Positions 21,623 to 35,053 of a stretch of DNA of 64,000 nt are shown one piece after another. The DNA comes from Cyanophora paradoxa CCMP329. Its lineage: Eukaryota > Plantae > Glaucophyta. Where the stretch lies: assembly GCA_004431415.1 (NCBI GenBank), contig QPMI01000647.1:97888-161887 (forward strand), written 5' to 3'. The position numbers and the translations under genes were made by a program. The first letter of the stretch is position 1, and each line of letters begins with the position of its first letter. The notes beneath the pieces were generated by a model that was given only the letters and a program-made list of their open reading frames with translations, was not told where the DNA came from and did not search any database.

Positions 21623-22829
21623 AACCTCTGCGCAGGCCGACATCCTTAAACTTGCTTCGAATTGCGATGAACCGCCGGGACTGCATTCGTGCTTGTAGGT
21701 TTCTAGATCTTCCGTTTCATTCCCTTTCATTCCTAGCTATAGCTATAGCTATAGCCTGCACAGCTTTTCCAATCTCATGACGATTATCATTAGCTACAGC
21801 TGCGGATGCATCCGCAGCTGTAATCATGATATCGATCATCTAACCGAACGTTAACCATGTCAATGCGCCCTTTCGTTTCCTTCAATTTCATGCCATGCCG
21901 ATAGCATGTTTCTAAATTTGCACAGCTTTTCCAAATACGATTCCATGATCATATGCATTGATATCGATGATCATGATTAACTGCAGTTGCAAAGGCATCA
22001 GTGTCCGTTAGTTACACGACCCACATGTTCGTTTTACGGCGCACGCAATCGCGTTTCAGTGCACAGTATGTACTAAGCATCAGATCTGCTGCTTCGAATT
22101 GCGTTAGAGTGCACAGTACACGTAGCTCTAGAGCTCTACATACACAGCTCGAGACCTAGACCATTAGCTAGACCGCAGGAGGACCATCATGAACCGCGCT
22201 ACGGTAGATAGATAGTTAGCGCTAGCTATAGTGACCTGATCATCATGAACCTGATTAAGCAGTAGTAGACCTGAACCTAGCTTAGCGAGCTAGCTGGAGC
22301 AGTAGTTAATGATCGAATTCGATTCAGAACCAAAGGCCCGAGATCAAGATTCAATCCAAGGCTGCAGTCATTATCACCGATCGAGACTTCATGCGTCGAT
22401 GTCAACGGCGTCATCTTGCGGCGCTAGCTGCAGCTGCGCATGCGGCGTTCAAAGAAATCGATCATGAATTCGTCGAAGGCCTGTCTTAACTGGCCAACTG
22501 TTGGATCCGGAGTTCGAAGCGTTCGGGACTATAGCTGAGCGTGGAAGCGTCCTCAACTCGGCGACAGCGTCGGACATGTACAGCGCACGAGCAAGCTGTT
22601 CCTGAACCGGGCTGTCCTCTCTCATGCCTAGCGGCTGCAATATCGCTAACTAACACACTAACACATAATCGTTATCACTGAATAGCTAGCTAGCGAGCTA
22701 TAGCCCGGGGCGTCTCAAACTCTGCGCCGACGGATGCGGGGACTCCGGGATTGGGGTGCGGGGGGTGCGGGGGGGGGGGGGGGGGGCGGGGGGGGGGGGG
22801 GCGATCAGGCGTCCAGCTCACGATCACGA

Positions 22830-25800
22830 TCAGGCGTCCAGCTCCGGTTTGGGCAGGGCCCGCCGCGCCCACGCGTCCCGCAGGCTGGCCGCCTCGCCCC
22901 GCCGCCCCCTCGACTCGTACCTGATCATGATCATGAGCCCAAAGCAAAACGTTAACAAGCGCGCGCTAAGCCGCAAGTCTCTAGATAGATCTCAGACGCA
23001 AAAGCAAAAGCACCATCTTAGCACCATCTATAGCTAAGCTTCTAATAAGAACTGTACGTATAATACTCAAGCACCATCTGAGGCCCTCGTCGTAGAAGGC
23101 CTCGGCGGCCGGCTCCCAGTCCAGCGCGAAGAGGAGCCGGAGGCCCCTCGGGAGGGGCCCGCCCGTGAGGCTCCTCACCAGCCTGCGCGCGCAGGTCGGC
23201 GTCAGCGTCGGCGGCCGATCGATATCGCGAGCCCGAGCAGCGGAGGAGGAGAAGTAGCCTAGAATGGCATACATATGTATATAGGATGGCGAGATCGAGA
23301 TAGCCTGACTTTAAGATCTAAGAGGGGAGCGTGCGGGTGCCCGGGCCGGGGCGGGCCTGCAGAGGTCGGCGGCGGAGCAGCGGAGGAGGCTCCCTCGATG
23401 GACGGAGCAGGAACGAACAGGTCGGCGTCGACGTCGGCGGCCGGCCGCGAGCGGAGATCTAGAGGGCCGACGAAGTACTAGTATCCTATAGCTAACACCG
23501 CATCTAAGAGGATATCGGCGGGCGGAGCAGGGGCGGGCCTAACATGGCATTCTAACATGGCAGTAATTTTTAAGAATATCCTAACATGGCATCTAATTTA
23601 GAAGAGGGGAGCGGGAGCCCGGGGCGAGCTAACGAGCCTGCAGAGGTCGGCGGCGGAGCAGCGGAGGAGGAGAAGTAGCCTAAAATGGCATATGTATATA
23701 GGATGGCGAGCTCGAGATCTAGATAGCCTGACTTTAAGATCTAAGAGGATATCGATGGGCGGGGCGGGGGGCGGGCCTGCAGAGGTCGGCGGCGGAGCAG
23801 CGGAGGAGGCTCCGGGCGTCCAGCTGGAGGCCCCGGAGCACCTCCACGTCCCTGCGGGCGGAAGAATTAGACATGAACAGAACTAAGAATCTGATGGAGC
23901 TGCTGAGCGGAGCGGAGCAGAAAAGAGGCGGACTCGTCGCTTATAAATTAGAAGCTTATATACAGTTCTTATAAGAAGCTTAGATGGCGCTAGACTATTA
24001 TGTAGGCTTCAGTACTAGTTCTTGTTAGGAGCAGATCTAGAAAAGGGGCGGACGCGTCGGGCAGCTGCCGCCTGGCGAGGAGCGTTGCTTCGAGGTAGGC
24101 CCAGACCCCTTCGTGCCCAAGGGACAAGACGTCGGCGCCGGCCGCTCTGGACGTAGATGGAGACCCGCGAAACACTTAGTTAGCACATGGACGAAGGCTG
24201 AAACAGTATCAGCTGCAGAAGAGAAAGAGCGCACGGGTGGGCACGGGCATGCATATGGCCATGGGCGGCCTCGACTGGCGCTGGCGTTGCCGGCGGACCG
24301 AAATGCGGAGGCGGCTGCGGCCTCTGCACGTGGCCAGGAGACGCGAGCGGCCCGGCCGAAGCGCACGGGGCTGCAGCTGCGGGCAGCTGCAGGCCGTCCG
24401 CGGCCGTTGAGGCCACGTCGCCTCGGGCCCCGCGATCAACGCCGGCGCCGGCCGCGGCGGCGCCCTCCGCCTCGAATTCGAATTCGTCCTGACGTGACGT
24501 TTCAGAAAATCCAGAAATGCTGGTGCGAGCGGCGGATCCGGAGGCTCGCCCGGAGCCAGCGCACCTCGAGCTCGTTGATGATCTCGACGGTGATGTCGTC
24601 GTCGTCTTCGTCGTCGCTCTCTGCTGCCGCGGTCGCGTCCCGCGAGCTCGAGCTCGAGGCCGCTGCGGGCTGCGGCTGCGCGTGCTGCGCCTCCAAATCT
24701 GCTGCGCTCAAGCACGCCGCTTGCCCGACTTGTTCGGCCTGTTCGGCTCGCTCGGCCGGGACGCAGATGCCGCCGCCGCCCACCTCTAGATCTTGCAAGA
24801 TGCCGTCCTCCGACGGCTCTGACGGCTCTGAGTGTGAGATGCGCGCACAGGCGCCGCGAGGCCCGAACGGACTGCTCACCGGCACCGGTACCCCGCTTTG
24901 ATCCCCCCGCGGCCCGCCCATCCAGCTCGCCGCCCGTTTCGGTCCACGGCCGGCTCGAGCTCCAGCGGCGGTCGCGATCGACGACGTACACGAAGCCCTC
25001 CTAAAGAGACGTGTCAGATTTGATACTAGAAATCAGATTAGAAATCTGATTAGCTACTGATAAGATTAGATTAGGATGAACGTTAACAGAGATCGCGATC
25101 GTGAGCGCGGATCCGGAGCACGTGCGGAGCGCTCATGCTAGAGCGCCGCGCTCACCATTCGCTTGGCGGTCCAGCTGACGACGCCCTCCTGCGTGCAGAA
25201 GTGGCGGAAGGGCCACCGGAAGATGTGGAGCGGCGAGCCGGCCTGCGCGCGCGCGCGCGAGCAGAGGTCAACGGGGGCGTGGCGATGCGCAAGCGAGCTG
25301 GCCGTGCGAGGCCAGGGGCCCGGGCTGCACGCACGAAGAAGCCCGAATGGGGCTTGTACTTCTTGTCCAGGTGCCGGAGCGTAAGGAGCTGCGATCGGCC
25401 CAATCGAAGTCAGAGGCCGACAACGTTAACACTCACATGAGGTGCTGGGCGGAGACCATAGTCTTGTCGGCAAGCGTCGCCTTGAACCGGTCGAGGATCT
25501 TTTGGGACAACTCCTCGGGAAACGCGAGGTTGGCCATGAAGATTTTTGAGTACCTGACGTCGCCGCTAGTTAAAGAATGGAAGATAATCTAGAATTAGAT
25601 TATAATTAGAAGGTTTTGGGGCCTCTGGGAGTGTTTGCAGTAACTGGCGATCGCGACGCCGCGCTTTCCGGGGCGCAGGCCCGCAAGGGCGGCGGGCCGG
25701 GGCGGAGAGCACAGGCTTCGGGGCCGGACGCGCGCACCCCTCGAAGCCGCTGTGGTCCGAGGCGTCCCCGCAGTGGAACTCGCACTCGCCCGCCTCGATC

Positions 25801-27318
25801 CCGTTCTCCGCCATCAGCTGCGCGCCCGGGGGGAGTCAGGCCTCATTTTTGAGATCTAAGAGGCATACAAAAACTTATATTTAGATGGGGTGGGGGGGGG
25901 GGGGGGCGAGGAGGGGGTGGGGTGGGGTGGGTGGGTGGGGGGGGGGGGGGGGCAGGGCAGGGCAGCCTCTTCTTTCTAGAAGCTAAGGGAGTGGCGGGGG
26001 GGGGGGGGGGGGGTGGGGGGGGGATGGGGGGGTCCGGGGGGGCTGGGGCGCACCCTGTTGAAGTGCGGGAGTACACTCATGGATGCTTGGTGGAGGTCGG
26101 CTCGGACCTCGATGCCGACCGCGCGGCAGCCCACCAGCGCCGCCACCTGCGCGCGTACGCAGTGTCAGGGAAGAAGCAGAGTCGCGGCTCCATCCGTCGA
26201 GTCACCTGGAAGACGACGTTGCCCCAGCCGCAGCCGATGTCGAGGAAGACGTCGTCCTTCGTCAGCTTGAGCTCCTTGATGATCTGCCGGCGGCGCGGTT
26301 GGCGGACAGCGGGCGGGGGACGCGGGCGGCAGAGTACTAGTCCGCTGCGGGCTCGCACGTCGACGCACGATGCGGACGAAGGGCGAGAGGACCTCGCCGT
26401 AGACCTCCCTCGAGAACGGCGTGTACTGCTTGACGATGCTCCCGTCCCAGTTCGCCAGGCGGTCCTGCGCCAGGGAAGACAGGCGGGGGGAAGGGGGTGG
26501 GGAAGCGGGGGGGGAGCGGATCAGGGACCGCGGGCCGAGCGGCGCGAACGCGGACGAGGGGGGCGCACGGCCTCGCTCATCAGCGCCTCGAGCTGAGTCG
26601 GCCGGGCGTAGGGCGCGCTGGGAGGGGCTCAGCGCGCGGGGGCGAGGGTGGGGGCGATCGCGAGCAGCCAAGGCGCGCGGGCGGCGCACCGGCCCCAGGC
26701 GCAGCCGTGGGGGAGCTTGGCTGATCGGATGTGGACCTTGGGCGGCTCTGGGGAAGGGGCCCGGCCCGGGGCCGAGCCCCAGCCGAGGGCGCGCTTCTTG
26801 GGGGCCGAGGAGTCGGGTCCGGATCCGGCGGAGGAGCCGGCGGGCGGGTCCGCGCCCTCCTCCTCCTCCCCGTCCTCCGTCTCGCTGCCCGACTCGTCCG
26901 CGTCGCGATCGTCGAGCTCCTCATCCGCGTATCCCTTCCACGACCTCCGCTTCTGCCGCTCGCTCGGCCCCCCCTCCGCTTCGCTCTCGCTGGCCGTGGA
27001 CTGCTCCTCGGCCTGCTCCTCGGCCCTACGCCGCCTCCGGTGCGGCGCTGCGGCCATCGGGGACGTCGCTACGCCCGAGCGCTCGAGCGTTGGGGCCAAG
27101 GTCCGGCGATGAGCCTTCCGAACGCGGAAGTCCGGGCTGCAGCTGACGGAGCGCGACGAACGGCGCGGGCCGCCCGACGGCGAGCGCGGAGCGTCCGGCT
27201 TCGGCTGCAAGCGCAAGGACGATCGGCCGCGGCTGCTATGAGGCGACTGTGGCTGCGCCCCCCGCGCCAGCTGTCTCGGCCGCAGCGTTGGCGTGTGAGC
27301 TCGACCGGTCTTCTCCAT
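22830..27318 (-). CDS. DOT1: DOT1-family histone H3K79 methyltransferase, copy A, with an acidic linker and SAM-like C-terminal extension
   Basis: Exons: YTPFSREVYGEVLSPFVRI; IIKELKLTKDDVFLDIGCGWGNVVFQ (motif I); VAALVGCRAVGIEVRADL; ECEFHCGDAS; YSKIFMANLAFPEELSQKILDRF; GVVSWTAKRM|EGFVYVVDR. Phase-compatible GT-AG splicing continues into EPSEPSEDG..., DVLSLGHEGVWAYLEATL, RDVEVLRGLQLDARSLLRCSAADLCR, TPTCARRLVRSL and ...PKPELDA* (stop ~22830). The catalytic domain is confident; the C-terminal joining is moderately confident. Confidence 0.85.
23230..23815. repeat. Intronic mosaic duplications containing copies of the adjacent exon end
   Basis: cctgcagaggtcggcggcggagcagcggaggagg occurs at ~23356, ~23637 and ~23776 (the last is the exon). 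The block gagaagtagccta..aatggcata..tgtatataggatggcgag..gatagcctgactttaagatctaagagg occurs at ~23249 and ~23670. Confidence 0.85.
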
Positions 27319-28260
27319 GGTCAGCGGCGAGGGCGGTACGTCGGGCTTCGGCTGTGATGATGATCAGCTGATAAAGAGCGCATGCGAGCGGGCGACGTAC
27401 CGCGCGCAGCGGCAGCTGCGCTGCAGCTGGACACGTACATGTACACGTACATGAGGTGACCGCAGTCGCGGCTGCCCCGCGACTCGTCCTGGCATGGCGG
27501 AGAACGCGCCGATCGGCAGCGATCGCGGTCTAGATCTTGTTTAGCTCTGCGTCGGGGCGCTGTCAATTGCAAGTGCGATCGATGGCCATGCGAGCGCAGC
27601 GGCGCGTCCCCGAGGCGTGCATACGCACCTTGTCCTTCGACAAGCCCGCCCCTCGGTCGTGCAGAAGCTAGGCGCCCGGCACGGATCGCGGGCATGCGAG
27701 GTCGTGCGCCCGACCGCAAGCTTGGTTGACTGCTTCAAGACTAGAGTCTGTCAAGCGTGCTGCGGGGTTGCAGATCTCTCCGGATCCCCGGCGCGCGGCC
27801 GGCGCCGCGGAGTTCAAGCCCACCAGAGGGGTATAGGCGCATGACCACTTCGTTCGCCGGCCGACGTCGACCCAGTTGCAATTGCACCGCGGCGCACTGC
27901 GGCAGCGCGCGCGCGCCTCAGGGCCCATGATGCTGTGGCCCTGCTGCTCCCCGTCCCACCTCGCGGCCGCGCGCCTCGGGCGCTGCAGCACTAGCTCTAG
28001 CACAGCGCTAGCGTGCATCTAGGCTTAGCTAATTGGGCCCGAGGTAGCGAGCCTCGGAGGAGGAGGAGGAGGGGGAAGAAGAAGAGGGGGGTGGAGGTGC
28101 TAAAAAAAAGGCAGAGCGGGGCCGGAGATGATCATGAGGGCCCCGGGAGGCCGGGAGGGGACGAGGGCCGGGGGCGGAAGGGCCCGGGGGCGAGGGCTGG
28201 GGGCGGGGAGCGGGGGGTGGGAGCGGAGAAGGAGGGAGGGGGACAGACGCCGCCGGCGCG

Positions 28261-31200
28261 CTAGCCGCCCGCCTGCGCCGCCGCCTGCGCCGGCCCCGCC
28301 GCGCCGGCCGCCGTCCACGGCCAGTTGCGCTGCACGACGTACACGAAGCCGTCCTGAACGAGACGCGTGGTCAGAATTGAGATTTGAAATCCCAGCTATC
28401 GATAAGATTGAATTTGAAATCAGAAAGCTTGAGATTAGATTCTGTAGTTAGCAAACGGGAGGGCTAGCTCAAGCCTACCATGTCCGTTGCGGTCCAGCTG
28501 ACGACTCTCCCGCGGGCGCGCGTCCGGACCTGGCGGCAGGGCCAGCGGAAGATCTGCAGCGGCGAGTCCGCCTGCGCGCGGGCGGGCGAGAGTGAGGGAG
28601 CACGGGGGACGAGTGAGGAGGAGGAGAGGGAGGGGGGGGAGGGAAGGGGAGGGGGGTACGGGCGCACGTAGAACCCCGACGTCGGCCTGTACTTCTTGTC
28701 GAGGTGCCGGAGGGTGAAGAGCTGCGAGGGGGGCGAGAGTCAAAATCCGGTACCGGTGTCAGGGCTGAATCTCGGAAGGGAGAAGAGGAGAAAAGACGGC
28801 CCGGCCCGGCTGGCCGCCCGCGGCCGACGCCACGGCTCCTAGTTCCACGCTTATGGTCGAGGCCGGGCCCGGCCCCGGGGCCAGGTCGGGAGCACGCGAG
28901 GTTCCCAAGAGGGCTTCTAAGGTCCAACTATGTGAAGGCCGGGGCCGGGGCCGGGAACGGGGGGGGGGAGCAGGGGGGTACCATGGAGCCGTCGGCGAGG
29001 GTCGCCTCGAAGCTGCGCTGGAGCTTCTGGGAGGTCTCCTCCGGGAAGAGCAGGTTGTTCATCAGGATCTTCGTGTACCTGGGGGGTACGTCGATTTCGT
29101 TCATCAGGGAAGTGGTGGGAGGGGGGGGGGGGGTACGGGGGCGCGCCTCTCGAAGGACCAGTCCTCAGCGTCCCCGCAGTGGAACTCGCACTCGCCCGCC
29201 TCGATCCCGTTCTCCGCCATCAGCTGCGCGCCCGGGGGCGGTCGGCTGCAGCGACAGCGCAGCGGGCCGGGGTTGGAGCTGGGGGTGTGGGGGGGGGGGG
29301 GGGGGGGGGCGGGGAGCGCAAAGACCTACATTAAGATGGGGCGAGGCGGGGCGGGGCGGGCGGGACGGCATCCTCTTCTTCTAATGGCTTAACTACGACC
29401 CCGCAGCGGTGCCGGGCGAGCGAGCGCACCCTGTTGAAGTGGGGCAGGAACTTTTTGGAGACGTCGTGGAGGTCCCGGCGGAGCTCGACGCCGACCGCGC
29501 GGCAGCCCACCAGCGCCGCCACCTGCACGCCACTGTATCAGGGAAGAAGCAGAGGCGCGGCTTCATCGAGTCACCTGAAAGACGACGTTGCCCCAGCCGC
29601 AGCCGATGTCGAGGAAGACGTCGTCCTTCGTCAGCTTGAGCTCCTTGATGATCTGCCGGCGGCATCGTCATCGCACAGCAGCGCGCGGCGAGCGGCGGCC
29701 CCGGCGCCCGCGGCGGGCTCGGACGCACGATGCGGACGAAGGGGGAGAGGACCTCTCCGAACGTGTCCTTGGAGAAGGCCGTGTAGCGCTTGGCGATGCT
29801 CCCGTCCCACAGGCGGTCCTGCGGAGGAGAAGAACTCAGGTGAGGCTCAGGTGTGCTCAGGTGAGCCGCAGGGCGCACGGCCTCGCTGATCAGGGCCTTC
29901 AGCTGAGTCGGCCGCGCGTAGGGCGCGCTGGGAGGGGCTCAGCGGGGGCGTGGGTGGGGGCAAGGGTGGGGCGAGCAGCTGCAGTTGAGGCGCGCGGCGC
30001 ACCGGCCCCAGGCGCAGCCGTGGGAGAGCTTGGCGGATCGAATGTGGACCTTGGGTGGCTCCGGGGAAGGGGCCCGGCCCGAGCCCGAGCCGAGGGCGCG
30101 CTTCTTGGGTGCAGACGAGTCGGATCCGGCGGAGGAGCCGGCGGGCGGGTCCGCGCCCTCCTCCTCCCCGTCCTCCGTCTCAGCGCCGGACTCATCTGAG
30201 TCGAGCTCCCCGGGCCCCTCGACCTCCGGGTTCGACTCCGGCGCTTTCCTCTTCCGCCGGCGCCTCCCGACGCTGGACGACGAGGCCCGCCTTGGCTTCT
30301 TCTGCTTCGGCCGCTCCTCTTCGTCCGCCTGCTTCGCCTCCTGTTCACCCTCGCTGCAGCTGGCCCGCTCCTCTTCCAGCCGCTTCCGCCCGCGGCCTCC
30401 GGACACCTTGACGCCCGTCTGCGCCGCTTGCCGCGTCCGCCCACGGCCGGCAGCGCTATTGGCAATCTTGACGCCCGTCTGCGCCGCCGGCCGCTTCCGC
30501 CCACGGCCGGCAGCGCTATTGGCAATCTTGATGCCCGTCTGCGCCGCCGGCCGCTTCCGCCCACGGCCGGCAGCGCTATTGGCAATCTTGACGCCCGTCT
30601 GCGCCGCCGGCCGCTTCCGCCCGCGCCTCGCCGCGATCTTGACGCCCGCCGACGCCGCTTGCCGCGTCCGCCCGCGCCCCGCCGCGATCTTGACGCCCGC
30701 CGACGCCGCTTGCCGCGTCCGCCCGCGCCCCCCCGCGATCTTGACGCCCGCCGACGCCGCTTGCCGCGTCCGCCCGCGCCCCGCCGCGATCTTGACGCCC
30801 GCCGACGCCGCTTGCCGCGTCCGCCCGCGCCCCCCCGCGATCTTGACGCCCGCCGATGCCGCTTGCCGCGTCCGCCCGCGCCCCCCCGCGATCTTGACGC
30901 CCGCCGACGCCGCTTGCCGCGTCCGCCCACGCCCCGCCGCGATCTTGACGCCCACCGACGCCGCTTGCCGCGTCCGCCCGCGCCCCGCCGCGATCTTGAC
31001 GCCCGCCGACGCCGCTTGCCGCGTCCGCCCGCGCCCCGCCGCGATCTTGACGCCCGCCGATGCCGCTTGCCGCGTCCGCCCGCGCCCCCCCGCGATCTTG
31101 ACGCCCGCCGACGCCGCTTGCCGCGTCCGCCCACGCCTTGCCGCGATCTTGACGCCCACCGACGCCGCTTGCCGCGTCCGCCCACGCCTTGCCGCAATCT

Positions 31201-33774
31201 TGACGCCCGCCGACGCCGCAAGCCGCGTCCGCCGCTTGACGCCCACCTGCGCCGCCAGCCGCTTTTGCCGCCGCCCTGTGGCAATCTTGACGCCCGCCGG
31301 CGGCGCAGGCCGCGTCCGGCCCCGCCCCGTAGCAATCTTGACGCCCGCCGGCGCTCCAAGCCGCTTTCGCCTGCGGGGCCCCGGGGTTTCGACGTCCTCC
31401 TGTGCCGCCAGCCGCGTCCACCTGCGCCCCGCGGCGACCTTGACGACCGCCTGCGCCGCCGGCCGCTTCTGTCCGCGGCCTCCAGCTATCTTGACGCCTG
31501 CCGACGCCGCCAGCCGCGTCCGCCGCTTCACGCCCGCCGGCGCCGCCAGCCGCTTTTGCCCCCGCCCCGTGGCAATCTTGACGCCCGCCGCCGTCGCCGG
31601 CCGCGTCCGGCCCCGCCCCGCGGCAATCTTGACGCCGGTCTGCGCCGCCGGCCGCTTCCGCCCGCGGCCGGTTGCGGAAATCGTGACGCCTGCCGGTTCC
31701 CCCAGCGGGCTCCACCCGCGGCCCGCTGTGATCCCGATGCTCGCCGACGCCTCCGGCGGGGCTATGATCTCGATGCCCGCTGGCTCCTCCGGCGGGCTCT
31801 GCTCGCCGTTCTCCGAGGTTTCAGCGGCCGCCTCCTCCTCCGGCCGCCGCCGGCTCCGCCCGCCGTCCGTGGCGAGGGCCGCGGGGTGCTCGTACCCGTA
31901 CCACGTTGGCGGGATGAGTCTCGCAAGCTCTCTGCTGGCCCCGCTCTTGCGCTGGTACTTCGCCTTCGATGCCGCCGCGCTAGAGGATTCCGCTGCGATC
32001 TCGATGCCCGCCTGTTCTTCCGGCCGCTTCCGCCTGCGGCCGGCAGGGATCTTGACGCCCCCCCGTGTCGTCGGCCGCTTCCGCCCGCGCCCCGCGGCGA
32101 TCTTGATGCTCGCCGACGCCACTTTCCGCGTCCGCCCGCGCCGCTTGGCGATCTTGCCGACCGACGTCGCCGCCAGCCGCTTACGCCGGCGGCTGGCAGC
32201 GATCTCGATGTCTGCCGGCCACTCCGGCGGGGCTGGGATCTCGATGCCCGCCGGCTCCTCCGGCGGGCTCTGCCCGCCGCTCTCCGAGATCGCAGCGGCC
32301 GCCTCCTCCTCCGGCCGCCGCCGGCTCCGCCCGCCGTCCGTGGCGAGGGCCGCGGGGTGCTCGTACCCGTACCACGTCGGCGGGATGAGTCTCGCAAGCT
32401 CTCTGCTGGCCCCGCTCTTGCGCTGGTACTTCCCCTTCGATGCCGCCGCGCTAGAGGATTCCGCTGCGATCTCGATGCCCGCCTGTTCTTCCGGCCGCTT
32501 CCGCCTGCGGCCGGCGGCGATCTTGACGCCCGCAGTCGCCGCCAGCCGCTTGCGCCCGCGCCCCTTGGCGATCTTGCCGGCCGACGTCGCCGCCAGCCGC
32601 TTACGCCGGCGGCCGGCAGCGATTTCGATGTCTGCCGGCTCTTCCGGCGGGGCTGGGATCTCGATGCCCGCCGGCTCCTCCGGCGGGCTCTGCCCGCCGT
32701 TCTCCGAGCTTTCAGCGGCCGCCTCCCCCTCCCGCCGCCGCCGGCTCCGCCCGCCGTCCGTGGCGAGGGCCGCGGGGTGCTCGTACCCGTACCACGTCGG
32801 CGGGATGAGTCTCGCAAGCTCTCTGCTGGCCCCGCTCTTGCGCTGGTACTTCGCCTTCGATGCCGCCGCGCTAGAGGATTCCGCTGCGATCTCGATGCCC
32901 GCCTGTTCTTCCGGCCGCTTCCGCCTGCGGCCGGCGGCGATCTTGACGCCCGCAGTCGCCGCCAGCCGCTTCCGCCCGCGCCCCGCGGCGATCTTGACAA
33001 CCGCTGACGCCACTTGCCGCGTCCGCCCGCGCCCCGCGGTGACTTTTAAGCCGCCCGAAGCTGCCGGCCGCTTCCGCCCGCGCCCCTTGGCGATCGTGAC
33101 GACCTCCTTCGCCGCCAGCTGCTTACGCCGGCGGCTGGCAGCGATCTCGATGCCCACTGGCTCCTCCGGCGGGCTCTGCTCGCTGTTCTCCGAGCTTTCA
33201 GCGGCCGCCTCCTCCTCCGACCGCCGCCGGCTCCGCCGGCGGTCCGTGGCGAGGGCCGCGGGGTGCTCGTACCCGTACCACGACGGGGGGAAAAGCAGTG
33301 CCAGCTCCCCGCCGGCCCTGCTCTTCCGCTTCTTCTTCGCCGTTGTTGATGCTGCCGCGTCTGAGGATTCCGCCGCGGTCGCTGGGGGCTGAGGCTGTGG
33401 CGCCGCGGCCGCCGTGAAGGACGAGCCGGCGGCGGCCGCGGCGGCCGCGGCGGATGCAGCAGCGCGCGTGGAAGGCCCCGCGACGGGCTGCGCCGTGCTC
33501 GAGCTCGAGCTGGAGGCGTGCGGCTCCGCTTTTCCCGCGGCTGAAGGCCGCCGGGCGCTCGTGGGGGCCGCTGCGCGCGCTCGGCGGTCAGAATTTGATC
33601 CGCGAGTGCGAGCCGGCCGGGCAGCGAACCATTGTCGCCCGCGCAAGAGGGAGAAGAAGGCGGCGCAGCCGTATTCAGCATCTCCTCGTGCGCTTGCCGC
33701 GGCTGCGGCTCGTCCCCCAGCGGCAGCTGCCGCTGTCTCGGCCGCAGCGTTGGCGTTCGAGCAGTCTTCTCCAT
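28261..33774 (-). CDS. DOT1: DOT1-family histone H3K79 methyltransferase, copy B, with a very long basic repetitive N-terminus
   Basis: ATG 33774 (MEKTARTPTLRPRQ, paralogous to MEKTGRAHTPTLRPRQ at 27318), a GT-AG intron ~33630-33571, a ~3.5 kb repeat exon, then YTAFSKDTFGEVLSPFVRI, IIKELKLTKDDVFLDIGCGWGNVVFQ, VAALVGCRAVGVELRRDL, ECEFHCGDAE, YTKILMNNLLFPEE, VVSWTATDM|DGFVYVVQRNW...AGG* (stop 28261-28263). Confidence 0.9.
30410..31240 (-). repeat. Coding minisatellites: about 12 x 51 bp (AGRGRTRQAASAGVKIA) and 3 x 60 bp (GRGRKRPAAQTGVKIANSAA)
   Basis: The unit ccgcgatcttgacgcccgccgacgccgcttgccgcgtccgcccgcgccccg recurs every 51 nt from 30631 to ~31230. A 60-nt unit occurs at ~30420, 30480 and 30540. 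Confidence 0.95.
31760..33310 (-). repeat. Higher-order coding repeat: four units of about 420-490 bp, each with an ELAxLxPPxWYGYEHPAALATD motif
   Basis: tccgtggcgagggccgcggggtgctcgtacccgtacca occurs at ~31866, ~32337, ~32757 and ~33243. Confidence 0.95.
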
Positions 33775-34429
33775 GCTCAGCGGCGAGCGCGGAACGTCGG
33801 GCTTCGGGTGCGATGAGATCAGTTGATGCAGAGAGCAAGCGAGCGGTCACGCACCGAGCGAAGCGGCGGCTGCGACGGCGGCTGCAGTTTTGGCGGCTGC
33901 CCCGCGGCTCGTCCCCGCATGGCGATCGCTTGCCGTGCGGCGGCCTGGAAGCATAGCGCTTGCTCAACGCTAGCTAAGCGGAGAGCGCATCGAGGTCCGC
34001 GTACCTAGGAGCCGCGGAGAGCCGCCGATCGGCAGTGACCAAGCGCTAGCCGTGCTCTGCGTTGGTACGCCTGGACGGCGCGGCGTCAAGTGCAATCGAA
34101 AGCGGCAGCACGAGCGCGCCAACGAGGGGCATAAGCGGACCTTGGCTGGTGACGGAAGCACGCGGGGGCGTGCGCGACGTGGGCGTGGGGCTCAAAGCGT
34201 GCCCAAGACCTTCGGAAGTCGCGCGGGGCCCCTGGCTGCTAGGACAACTGGTGCGGGGTACGAGGCGCCGAGCCCGGCCGGGTACAGTAGACGAACTCGG
34301 TGCCGACGTCGCGGGTCGGGGTACGGAAGCAGAACAGACGTCGGCCTTCGCGTTGCGACCAGTCAGCGGAGACAGCGGAGACAGGCTAAGAAAGCACACA
34401 AAGCGCACGAGAAGCCAGTTTTCTCATGG

Positions 34430-35053
34430 TCTGATTGATCATCGACGGTACGCGCGAGGCGCACGCGTGCGTCTCCGGCCGCGCGCACTCACTTCCTCCA
34501 CCCGCGCAGCCTGCAAGTGGGTGGCAGGCAAGATCTCGGGGTGCGCGGCCCTGCATCGGCATGGGGTTATCGCGCGTGGCGCGTGACGCTGGGTGCGCAG
34601 GAAGCCGTCGGAGCGGGAGGGGTGCATCCTGGCGCCCCCGCGCCGCAATCAGGACAGCATGCATCAGTATGTCGAGAACCCAGACAAGGCGGGCCACTAC
34701 GGAGGCTATGGAGGTTACGGGCAGGGCAATCCCGGCCAGGACCTGACCTCGTCCCCGTACGGCGGCACCGTGCGCCGCCTCCGATTGTTTGAGCCCTTTT
34801 CGCATGCTCACATGGATCTTTGCAGAGCCAGCGGCCTTCGCGGAAGAAGCAGTCGGGTATATCTGACTACGGCGACACGGGGCAGTAGGCTCCAACTTTC
34901 TGGTGCGCGCGCTCGGACTGACGCTGCCATTCGGATCGGACTCTGACCGCGCCGCGCACCCGCAGAGCCGGGCGCGCCCCGCGCTGCGCTGGGGCGGCGG
35001 GACCGACGAGCGGGCACGCAGAATGACGGACAGCGCAGCAAAGGCGTCCTCTA
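34430..35053 (+). CDS. Possible small spliced gene of unknown function (Gly/Tyr-rich segment)
   Basis: The exon-like segment KPSEREGCILAPPRRNQDSMHQYVENPDKAGHYGGYGGYGQGNPGQDLTSSPYGGT is flanked by gcag/gtgcg splice-like sites. No clear start codon or known homology was found. Confidence 0.3.

Follow-up and report, generated by a model that had tools for sequence, protein, structure and literature searches.

A transcribed tandem pair of DOT1-family genes with different accessory regions in the glaucophyte Cyanophora paradoxa

DOT1 enzymes are class I, S-adenosylmethionine-dependent protein-lysine methyltransferases, the known members of which methylate nucleosomal histone H3 at lysine 79 (H3K79), and DOT1 is usually a single-copy enzyme. 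A stretch of 64,000 nucleotides from Cyanophora paradoxa CCMP329 (contig QPMI01000647.1), hereafter the window, the positions of which serve as coordinates throughout, contains two neighboring DOT1 genes, copy A (22830-27818) and copy B (28261 to ~33920), both on the minus strand. What do two adjacent copies of such an enzyme represent? The initial annotation of the locus proposed a two-part H3K79 system, in which B would be an active writer tethered to chromatin by basic repeats and A a probable pseudo-enzyme fused to a sterile alpha motif (SAM) domain. We lean towards a different reading, namely that A and B are transcribed tandem members of a lineage-specific DOT1 expansion which differ in their accessory regions, and that the catalytic-motif change in A tunes its activity rather than killing it. 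Their family membership, gene structures and transcription, the Asn-to-Ala change in A and the strong conservation of the A core are established.

The relation between the two copies was assessed by blastn of positions 22001-28200 against 28201-35000. The matches were collinear and showed 82% identity between 26048-26449 and 29424-29809 and 85% between 26561-26905 and 29871-30203, which gives 82-85% for the catalytic exons, and 82% in the 5' region between 27266-27429 and 33729-33884. The nine core coding exons of each copy are separated by eight introns, all of which coincide between A and B in position and phase. Corresponding exons are of the same size or deviate by 3 or 6 nt, i.e., by multiples of three, and the exon encoding motif I is 100% identical at the protein level. 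Over 269 codons of the core, the two proteins share 78% identity, with a synonymous divergence (dS) of 0.35 and a ratio of non-synonymous to synonymous divergence (dN/dS) of 0.42. Thus, the proposals that two adjacent same-strand DOT1 genes share a 5' flank, intron positions and catalytic exons, and that they are whole-gene tandem paralogs that diverged at opposite ends by a repeat arm in B and a tail in A, are borne out, with a Pfam DOT1 match on A as additional support for the first of them.

Transcription was assessed with contigs from four public sequencing runs, which were mapped onto 22830-28800. Three of these runs, from two studies, represent spliced cDNA, and the fourth, generated in 2012 with Illumina technology, is genomic DNA that aligns collinearly to the window. 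Across the mapped region, neither the RNA nor the DNA contigs were reported to differ from it in any letter. The RNA contigs, which extend over A and the 3' end of B, are spliced in both, so that both copies are transcribed. A mis-join of haplotypes was rejected, since A and B show 15-18% divergence in their exons and no relation in their introns or at either end; the independent DNA contigs of 2012, which span nearly all of 26837-28800, also count against it, and the pair stands. Within the background of ~82% identity, one block of 71 nt is 100% identical between the copies (25762-25832 and 29168-29238). It covers an intron acceptor and the beginning of the exon encoding 'LMAENG', and it is probably a patch of recent gene conversion. 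This block explains an odd RNA joint, 25818>26103, in which 41 nt at ~95% identity are followed by the 71 nt that are identical in both copies. An isoform of A was considered for this joint and rejected, and it is best read as a B transcript that was mapped on A.

The searches for relatives were performed with single exons, stop-free open reading frames (ORFs) or database proteins, designated P0001, P0002 and P0003-P0005, whilst the joined exons of A and B were used only for frame checks, dN/dS, an alignment of five paralogs and a tree. Exon searches identified P0001 and P0002 as the EukProt models tig00021521_g22084.t1 and g22085.t1 of C. paradoxa, which correspond to the C-terminal and N-terminal halves of A, respectively. 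With PF08123, the DOT1 profile of Pfam with a curated cut-off of 23 bits, P0002 gave 68 bits (E 1e-18) and a single exon ORF of A 25.5 bits; the C-terminal half alone gave 11.5 bits at profile positions 126-202. The exon ORFs of B gave no Pfam hit individually, and the membership of B rests on its identity to A over the 269 codons mentioned above. P0002 matched residues 121-190 of human DOT1L (E 1e-11), and a profile of 13 family members found DOT1L with E 2e-62 and yeast Dot1 with E 4e-39. The best solved relatives of this profile are all H3K79 or H3K76 enzymes. Thus, the expected match of the family profile to A was obtained, but that of SAM families to its tail was not (see below).

The transcribed unit of A, as far as seen from spliced RNA contigs, sites adjusted to GT..AG and reading frames, occupies 22830-27818 and consists of two 5' exons (27818-27629 and 27546-27401) and 16 coding exons, ending at a TGA stop codon (22830-22832). 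The RNA contigs contain 11 canonical GT..AG introns, the sites of which aligned after small shifts, whilst a 12th joint (23183-23776) fits only a GC..AG intron. Depending on the start codon, the product has ~753 amino-acid residues (ATG at 27318) or ~666 residues (the alternative ATG of the annotation at 27057). The first coding exon (26690-27318), defined by reading frames and by the annotated P0002, encodes an acidic, Ser-rich N-terminus followed by a conserved 'KVHIRSAKLPHGCAWGR' element; at 26690, the RNA contig departs from the genome. A 49-nt exon (26569-26617), encoding 'APYARPTQLEALMSEA', restores the reading frame between this exon and the DOT1 exons. It was inferred from the frame, GT..AG ends and conservation in B, and P0002 confirms it. 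The catalytic core (24962-26464) was delineated by the Pfam and DOT1L matches, the family profile and RNA joints and is encoded by eight exons: 26464-26369, 26283-26206, 26146-26054, 25817-25738, 25553-25457, 25388-25335, 25242-25156 and 25000-24962, the latter being the start of exon 25000-24880. The junction of 26054 to 25817 is in phase 0, has GT..AG ends and continues the DOT1 profile, and it is the same in B and in three other paralogs. A low-complexity, acidic and Ala-/Pro-rich linker (24235-24961), supported by RNA contigs and the sequence of P0001, is encoded by the remainder of exon 25000-24880 and by exons 24818-24565 and 24488-24235. It is followed by a helical C-terminal domain of ~110 residues (22833-24146), supported by RNA joints and by conservation in P0003 and encoded by exons 24146-24054, 23851-23777, 23182-23075 and 22920-22833; the GT..AG intron 22921-23074 is backed by the annotation, by conservation in the paralog and by a contig break at 23073.

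In the public models, P0002 extends into the intron after 'HFNR', and P0001 begins with 'MAENG' and omits the 75-nt exon 23851-23777. As this exon is present in the RNA contigs and conserved in the paralog g22066 (P0003), the public annotation cuts A into two models and drops one exon. Upstream of the coding exons of A, there is an ATG at 27495 ('MPGRVAGQP') with homologous counterparts at the start of g22066 and, in B, at 33854-33920 with an ATG at 33920 (pattern 'M[PR]GR[VA]AGQP'). A carries a deletion of 1 nt as compared to B, as a consequence of which its ATG now starts a short upstream ORF of ~41 codons (27401-27495). Genome and RNA contigs coincide in this part, and the stop codon of the upstream ORF lies 2 nt ahead of the ATG of 'MEKT'. 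As a side observation, the penultimate intron of A (23183-23776; 594 nt), i.e., the one with the GC donor, contains an internal tandem duplication of ~420 nt, which includes an exact copy of 46 nt from the exon-intron border (23348-23393 = 23768-23813), and a pseudo-copy of the donor is therefore present inside this intron.

In B, the core with the 49-nt exon and the stop codon was delineated at 28261-29927 by tblastn of the A proteins and by splice sites. Its exons are located at 29927-29879, 29818-29729, 29652-29575, 29522-29430, 29223-29147, 29078-28982, 28721-28668, 28571-28479 and 28353-28261; they are intact and have a GC content at third codon positions (GC3) of 0.97. The TAG stop codon (28261-28263) lies 18 residues past the last strand of the fold, and the last intron (28354-28478) and the terminal exon are confirmed by RNA contigs. 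Ahead of this core lies a long 5' exon, 30003-33973 as measured to its splice donor at 30003, in a frame that is open to 29942; the stop-free stretch 29942-33973 comprises 1,344 codons. The last ~60 codons of the exon are homologous to the first coding exon of A. The exon encodes four units of ~140 residues with 'WYGYEHPAALATD', as well as acidic stretches, 21 'GRGR[KT]R' motifs and ~20 copies of a 17-residue unit. The repeats are mutually 93-96% identical, and their periods, 51, 60, 87, 138, 240, 291 and 420 nt, are all multiples of three. Its GC3 is 0.84-0.90 from ~33570 downstream, as compared to 0.87 in known coding sequence, and 0.64 in the first 134 codons; in 90-nt windows, GC3 by frame was too noisy to locate a frame change near the start of B. 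The description of B as a gene with a long basic repeat arm and an early stop after the fold is thus accurate. The tripeptide GRP is found nowhere in the 1,344 residues and an AT-hook hit in Pfam was not obtained; the absence of this core means that the repeats are not canonical AT-hooks. Their charge and the analogy with the Lys-rich segments of Dot1 and DOT1L suggest that they may bind DNA. On the opposite strand of the repeat exon, two plus-strand ORFs were noted, i.e., 29985-33392 (1,135 codons) and 30428-33007 (859 codons); they are read as by-products of GC-rich, stop-poor repeats and not as evidence for an antisense gene.

Do A and B form a closed pair? An exhaustive search with residues 120-229 of P0002 yielded 1,047 relatives, the closest of which were three more proteins of C. 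paradoxa, so that the DOT1 family of this species consists of at least five paralogs (A, B, g22066, g7164 and g16466). The g22066 gene is located on the same contig as A and encodes a protein of 690 residues with an A-type tail. The g16466 protein (811 residues) has a different N-terminal extension and a B-like end, whilst g7164 (P0004, tig00001127_g7164.t1; 810 residues) combines DOT1 with a coiled coil and a RING finger. The coiled coil of the latter protein is a long 'AQLAQERTAREAAA' repeat, and its RING finger is C-terminal and of the C3HC4 type (Pfam E 1e-11); such a protein would unite a methyltransferase with a likely ubiquitin ligase. All family members share the conserved element preceding the domain and the DOT1 fold, and they differ in their accessory regions. 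By maximum likelihood, the five Cyanophora cores were recovered as a single clade (support 100/99) on a long branch (1.28). Within it, g16466 is the partner of B (97/97), the position of A next to these two is weakly supported (71/41), and g22066 is basal; A has the shortest end branch (0.08). The nearest relatives outside Cyanophora are found in amoebozoans, a choanoflagellate and metagenomes, and some of them are annotated as H3K79-specific. Moreover, the identity between A and B does not exceed that between A and the dispersed paralogs, and the tandem pair is therefore not a young, closed two-gene system. Thus, the proposed two-part H3K79 system was not supported.

The altered catalytic motif that had been noted in A was located by profile alignment at 25532-25534, where A has a GCC codon for Ala at the site of Asn241 of human DOT1L, the first Asn of motif IV. 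B has AAC here, two base changes away. The Asn-Asn pair of this motif (N241-N242 in DOT1L) is thus Ala-Asn in A, and B and the remaining three paralogs have Asn-Asn. Among 114 family representatives covering this column, the first position is occupied by Asn in 108, by Ala in three, one of which is copy A, by Cys in two and by His in one. Ala at this position is rare yet recurrent. In the 252 columns that are aligned in all five paralogs, A shows two private changes at positions where the other four agree, as compared to seven in B, 11 in g7164, 12 in g22066 and 20 in g16466. The two changes in A are the Asn-to-Ala change in motif IV and an Asp-to-Gly change at a position that is variable in the family. 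Besides, A retains all 12 near-invariant DOT1 residues of the alignment; YGE, DxGxGxG, the motif II Glu, the GD Asp, the second Asn, SW and the final Tyr are all present. B also retains the S-adenosylmethionine-binding motifs, save that Phe replaces the Tyr of YGE (Y136 in DOT1L), a residue found in 151 of 152 representatives. In the active complex of DOT1L, Y136 stacks on His18 of histone H4 (PMC8671179), and Phe would keep the ring.

The published evidence on the effect of an Ala at this site is divided (for the data that point to inactivity, see below). In vitro, DOT1L with the N241A substitution still yields H3K79me2 on ubiquitinated nucleosomes as determined by quantitative mass spectrometry (PMC10951340). 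Furthermore, DOT1B of Trypanosoma brucei, an active trimethyltransferase, naturally contains Ala197 at this site, where DOT1A has Ser218, and swapping these residues shifts the preference of the enzymes between unmethylated and methylated substrates (PMC10951340). One targeted change on a tightly constrained core fits specialization better than decay. With only two private changes against 7-20 in the other paralogs, with the near-invariant residues complete and with an Ala in active DOT1B, the designation of A as a probable pseudo-enzyme was not supported.

What, then, is the tail of A? A C-terminal extension indeed exists, but it is not new as had been proposed, since it is shared exon by exon with g22066: all four tail exons are conserved at the end of P0003, with 46-62% identity. 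Most simply, the tail would have been present in the ancestor, with loss or replacement in the lineages that lack it, an explanation that is limited by the uncertain root of the clade. The tail was searched exon by exon and via P0003. In Pfam, no SAM domain was found on any minus-strand ORF of 22450-25030, and no family at all matched the tail exons, residues 300-411 of P0001 or residues 560-690 of P0003. A sequence search of the Protein Data Bank (PDB) with the tail retrieved no SAM-domain chain at E up to 10, and a feature search of the ESM Atlas gave no usable hit and no SAM signal. AlphaFold models of the g22066 tail, alone or with the A pieces as alignment, are all-helical, with 8-10 helices over ~125 residues at low to middling confidence (pLDDT 55 and 62.7). 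Three fold searches with these models (Foldseek, VIA-align) did not retrieve a SAM domain among the top 50; the best Z score, 5.8, was for generic helical-repeat proteins, and the guidance of the tool treats such a score as uninformative. On these models, the most suitable description of the tail is that of a helical domain which is conserved and in which no known fold was recognized. The claim that A is fused to a SAM domain thus found no signal in Pfam, PDB sequences or folds, and oligomerization via the tail, which was considered as well, is unsupported.

How might these proteins work? A consists of a short acidic N-terminus, the core, a linker and the ~110-residue helical C-terminal domain that is also found in g22066, whilst in B some 1,000 residues or more of recently amplified basic repeats would precede the core and nothing follows it. 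Both proteins may still bind S-adenosylmethionine and methylate, and their accessory regions may aim them at different chromatin contexts. The basic repeats of B would serve as a tether to DNA or nucleosomes, like the Lys-rich segments of Dot1 and DOT1L. The Asn-to-Ala change in A may tune its activity or its preference for unmethylated or already methylated lysine, by analogy with the Ser/Ala switch of the trypanosome enzymes. A further step, which we consider quite improbable, would be that A converged on the solution of trypanosome DOT1B, i.e., that it prefers methylated H3K79 and completes the higher methylation states which Asn-type paralogs, e.g., B, have initiated. If true, division of labor between DOT1 enzymes would have arisen a second time and independently, here combined with module swapping, in which a basic repeat tether, a helical tail and a RING finger send paralogs to different chromatin.

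Several observations weigh against the reading of A and B as transcribed and specialized members of an expansion; one of them is that the junction of 26054 to 25817, which connects the two annotated halves of A, was not found in any of the listed contigs. Three other explanations were considered. One of these, close to the proposal of the initial annotation, is that A is a dead pseudo-enzyme, which acts as a reader or regulator and oligomerizes by its tail, with B as the active, chromatin-tethered writer. The N241A variant of DOT1L was reported to be inactive in cells and serves as a catalytically inactive allele in the mouse (PMC9207516), and modeling rates N241 as intolerant to substitution (PMC8671179); A may thus have lost much or all of its activity. 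The extra conserved C-terminal domain of A and the predominance of Asn at the site also fit a pseudo-enzyme, and the strong conservation of the core would fit a protein that binds S-adenosylmethionine and is not catalytic. However, the methylation by N241A in vitro and the natural Ala of DOT1B show that Ala at this site is compatible with activity, all other near-invariant catalytic and S-adenosylmethionine-binding residues are kept in the slowest-evolving paralog of the five, and the absence of a SAM-domain signal deprives oligomerization of its basis. As for the other half of this explanation, B departs from the norm as well, with Phe in YGE, a GC donor and no in-frame ATG, and the existence of at least five paralogs does not fit a closed pair. 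We consider this explanation unlikely, and the pseudo-enzyme is the less likely of the two interpretations of A as compared to specialization.

An alternative for B is that it is a decaying or non-coding duplicate, in which the repeats expand freely and no usable start is present, and that A and the other paralogs do the work. In the frame of its 1,344-codon exon, not a single Met codon is found. The region of 33699-33944 is homologous to 27243-27520 in A, but neither of the two ATGs in B, at 33920 ('MRGRAAGQP') and at 33774 ('MEKTART'), is in frame with the long exon in the present assembly. Hence, of the start peptide that the copies were thought to share, 'MEKT' is indeed present in both, but it does not open the long frame in B. 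In the 5' region of B, after the upstream ATG, the AG acceptor of the following intron, which is conserved in A, is changed, and comparison of the splice sites revealed that the intron of 29079-29146 has a GC donor (AG/GCGCGC) where A has GT. B RNA was seen at the 3' end only, plus the one indirect joint, in the mapping of 22830-28800, and a database search with the end of the long exon, which covered only proteins of 739-2,352 residues, gave no hit. The substitution in the invariant YGE motif and the youth of the repeats, as reflected in their near-identity, could be added. In contrast, a frame of 4 kb is open and in phase with a conserved exon end, its GC3 resembles that of known coding sequence, the repeat periods preserve the frame, the core exons are intact with only seven private changes, and the 3' end is transcribed and correctly spliced. 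GC-AG introns are generally functional in eukaryotes, and the long-read assembly may carry an indel near the start. The missing start could reflect an unseen intron, an assembly indel or decay, and we regard decay of B as a whole as distinctly unlikely. Equally doubtful, in our opinion, is that the Cyanophora clade is a divergent DOT1-like subfamily with a target other than H3K79, i.e., another histone site or a non-histone protein. That H3K79 is the target of these proteins is assumed from the family. The clade lies on its long branch apart from other eukaryotic DOT1s, the paralogs score lower in Pfam than other protist DOT1s (77-97 vs. 131-192 bits), the C-terminal half of A on its own falls below the cut-off, and histone marks and their writers correlate poorly across eukaryotes (bioRxiv 10.1101/2021.11.30.470311). 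Against this, every one of the best solved relatives acts on H3K79 or H3K76, the nearest homologs outside Cyanophora include proteins annotated as H3K79-specific, and the SW motif and YGE residues, which line the lysine channel and the H4-tail pocket in DOT1L, are kept.

Taking A and B as members of a lineage-specific expansion, how do they compare with known DOT1 systems? With human DOT1L and yeast Dot1, the Cyanophora copies share the fold, YGE, DxGxGxG, the motif II Glu, GD, the NN of motif IV and SW, and basic segments adjoin the core. These segments of Dot1 and DOT1L are reportedly needed for nucleosome binding. In contrast to these enzymes, those of Cyanophora are multi-copy and not single-copy, with Ala at the N241 position in A and Phe at that of Y136 in B. 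Their accessory regions are unrelated to the AF9/AF10-binding C-terminus of DOT1L, and the lineage-specific 'KVHIRSAKLPHGCAWGR' element replaces the N-terminal helical region at the sequence level. Another parallel is the kinetoplastid pair DOT1A and DOT1B, the H3K76 di- and trimethyltransferases, since these paralogs differ at the same motif IV residue and DOT1B has Ala like A. The corresponding difference is present here, with Asn in B and Ala in A, and the sister of B is g16466. In contrast to the kinetoplastid pair, Cyanophora has at least five paralogs, of which those without Ala have Asn and not Ser. Their duplication was independent, as the Cyanophora copies form their own clade, and the kinetoplastid enzymes are short, with solved chains of ~257 residues, and lack large accessory regions.

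The DOT1.1-DOT1.5 proteins of brown algae (Nat Ecol Evol 2026, PMC13076208) likewise show lineage-specific multiplication, new domain associations and variable architectures, which include degenerate domains (PMC13076208). Glaucophytes belong to another supergroup, so that their expansion is independent, and the modules in Cyanophora are different, i.e., a basic repeat array, a helical tail and a coiled coil with a RING finger. A paper on DOT1 in Cyanophora was not found, the sole co-occurrence in full texts being a study of SET-domain proteins. Exceptions to the single-copy rule, such as those in kinetoplastids and brown algae, are informative on how H3K79 methylation states are made and reused. 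The glaucophyte family, with its five or more genes, provides natural material for studying the role of the motif IV residue on an otherwise almost unchanged core, and it also bears on how accessory regions aim DOT1 at chromatin. Because the public gene models are wrong, with A split and one exon lost and with no model found for B among proteins of 739-2,352 residues, censuses of chromatin genes in C. paradoxa will miscount DOT1.

Finally, the GC content of the window is 57-78%, and long tracts of poly-C/poly-G and of the CCCCCCA type were observed at 25879-26042, 29240-29330 and 22753-22801. They are located in the introns that precede the 'LMAENG' exons of both copies and just past the 3' end of A, and the coverage by contigs of both the DNA and the RNA runs falls at all of these tracts.

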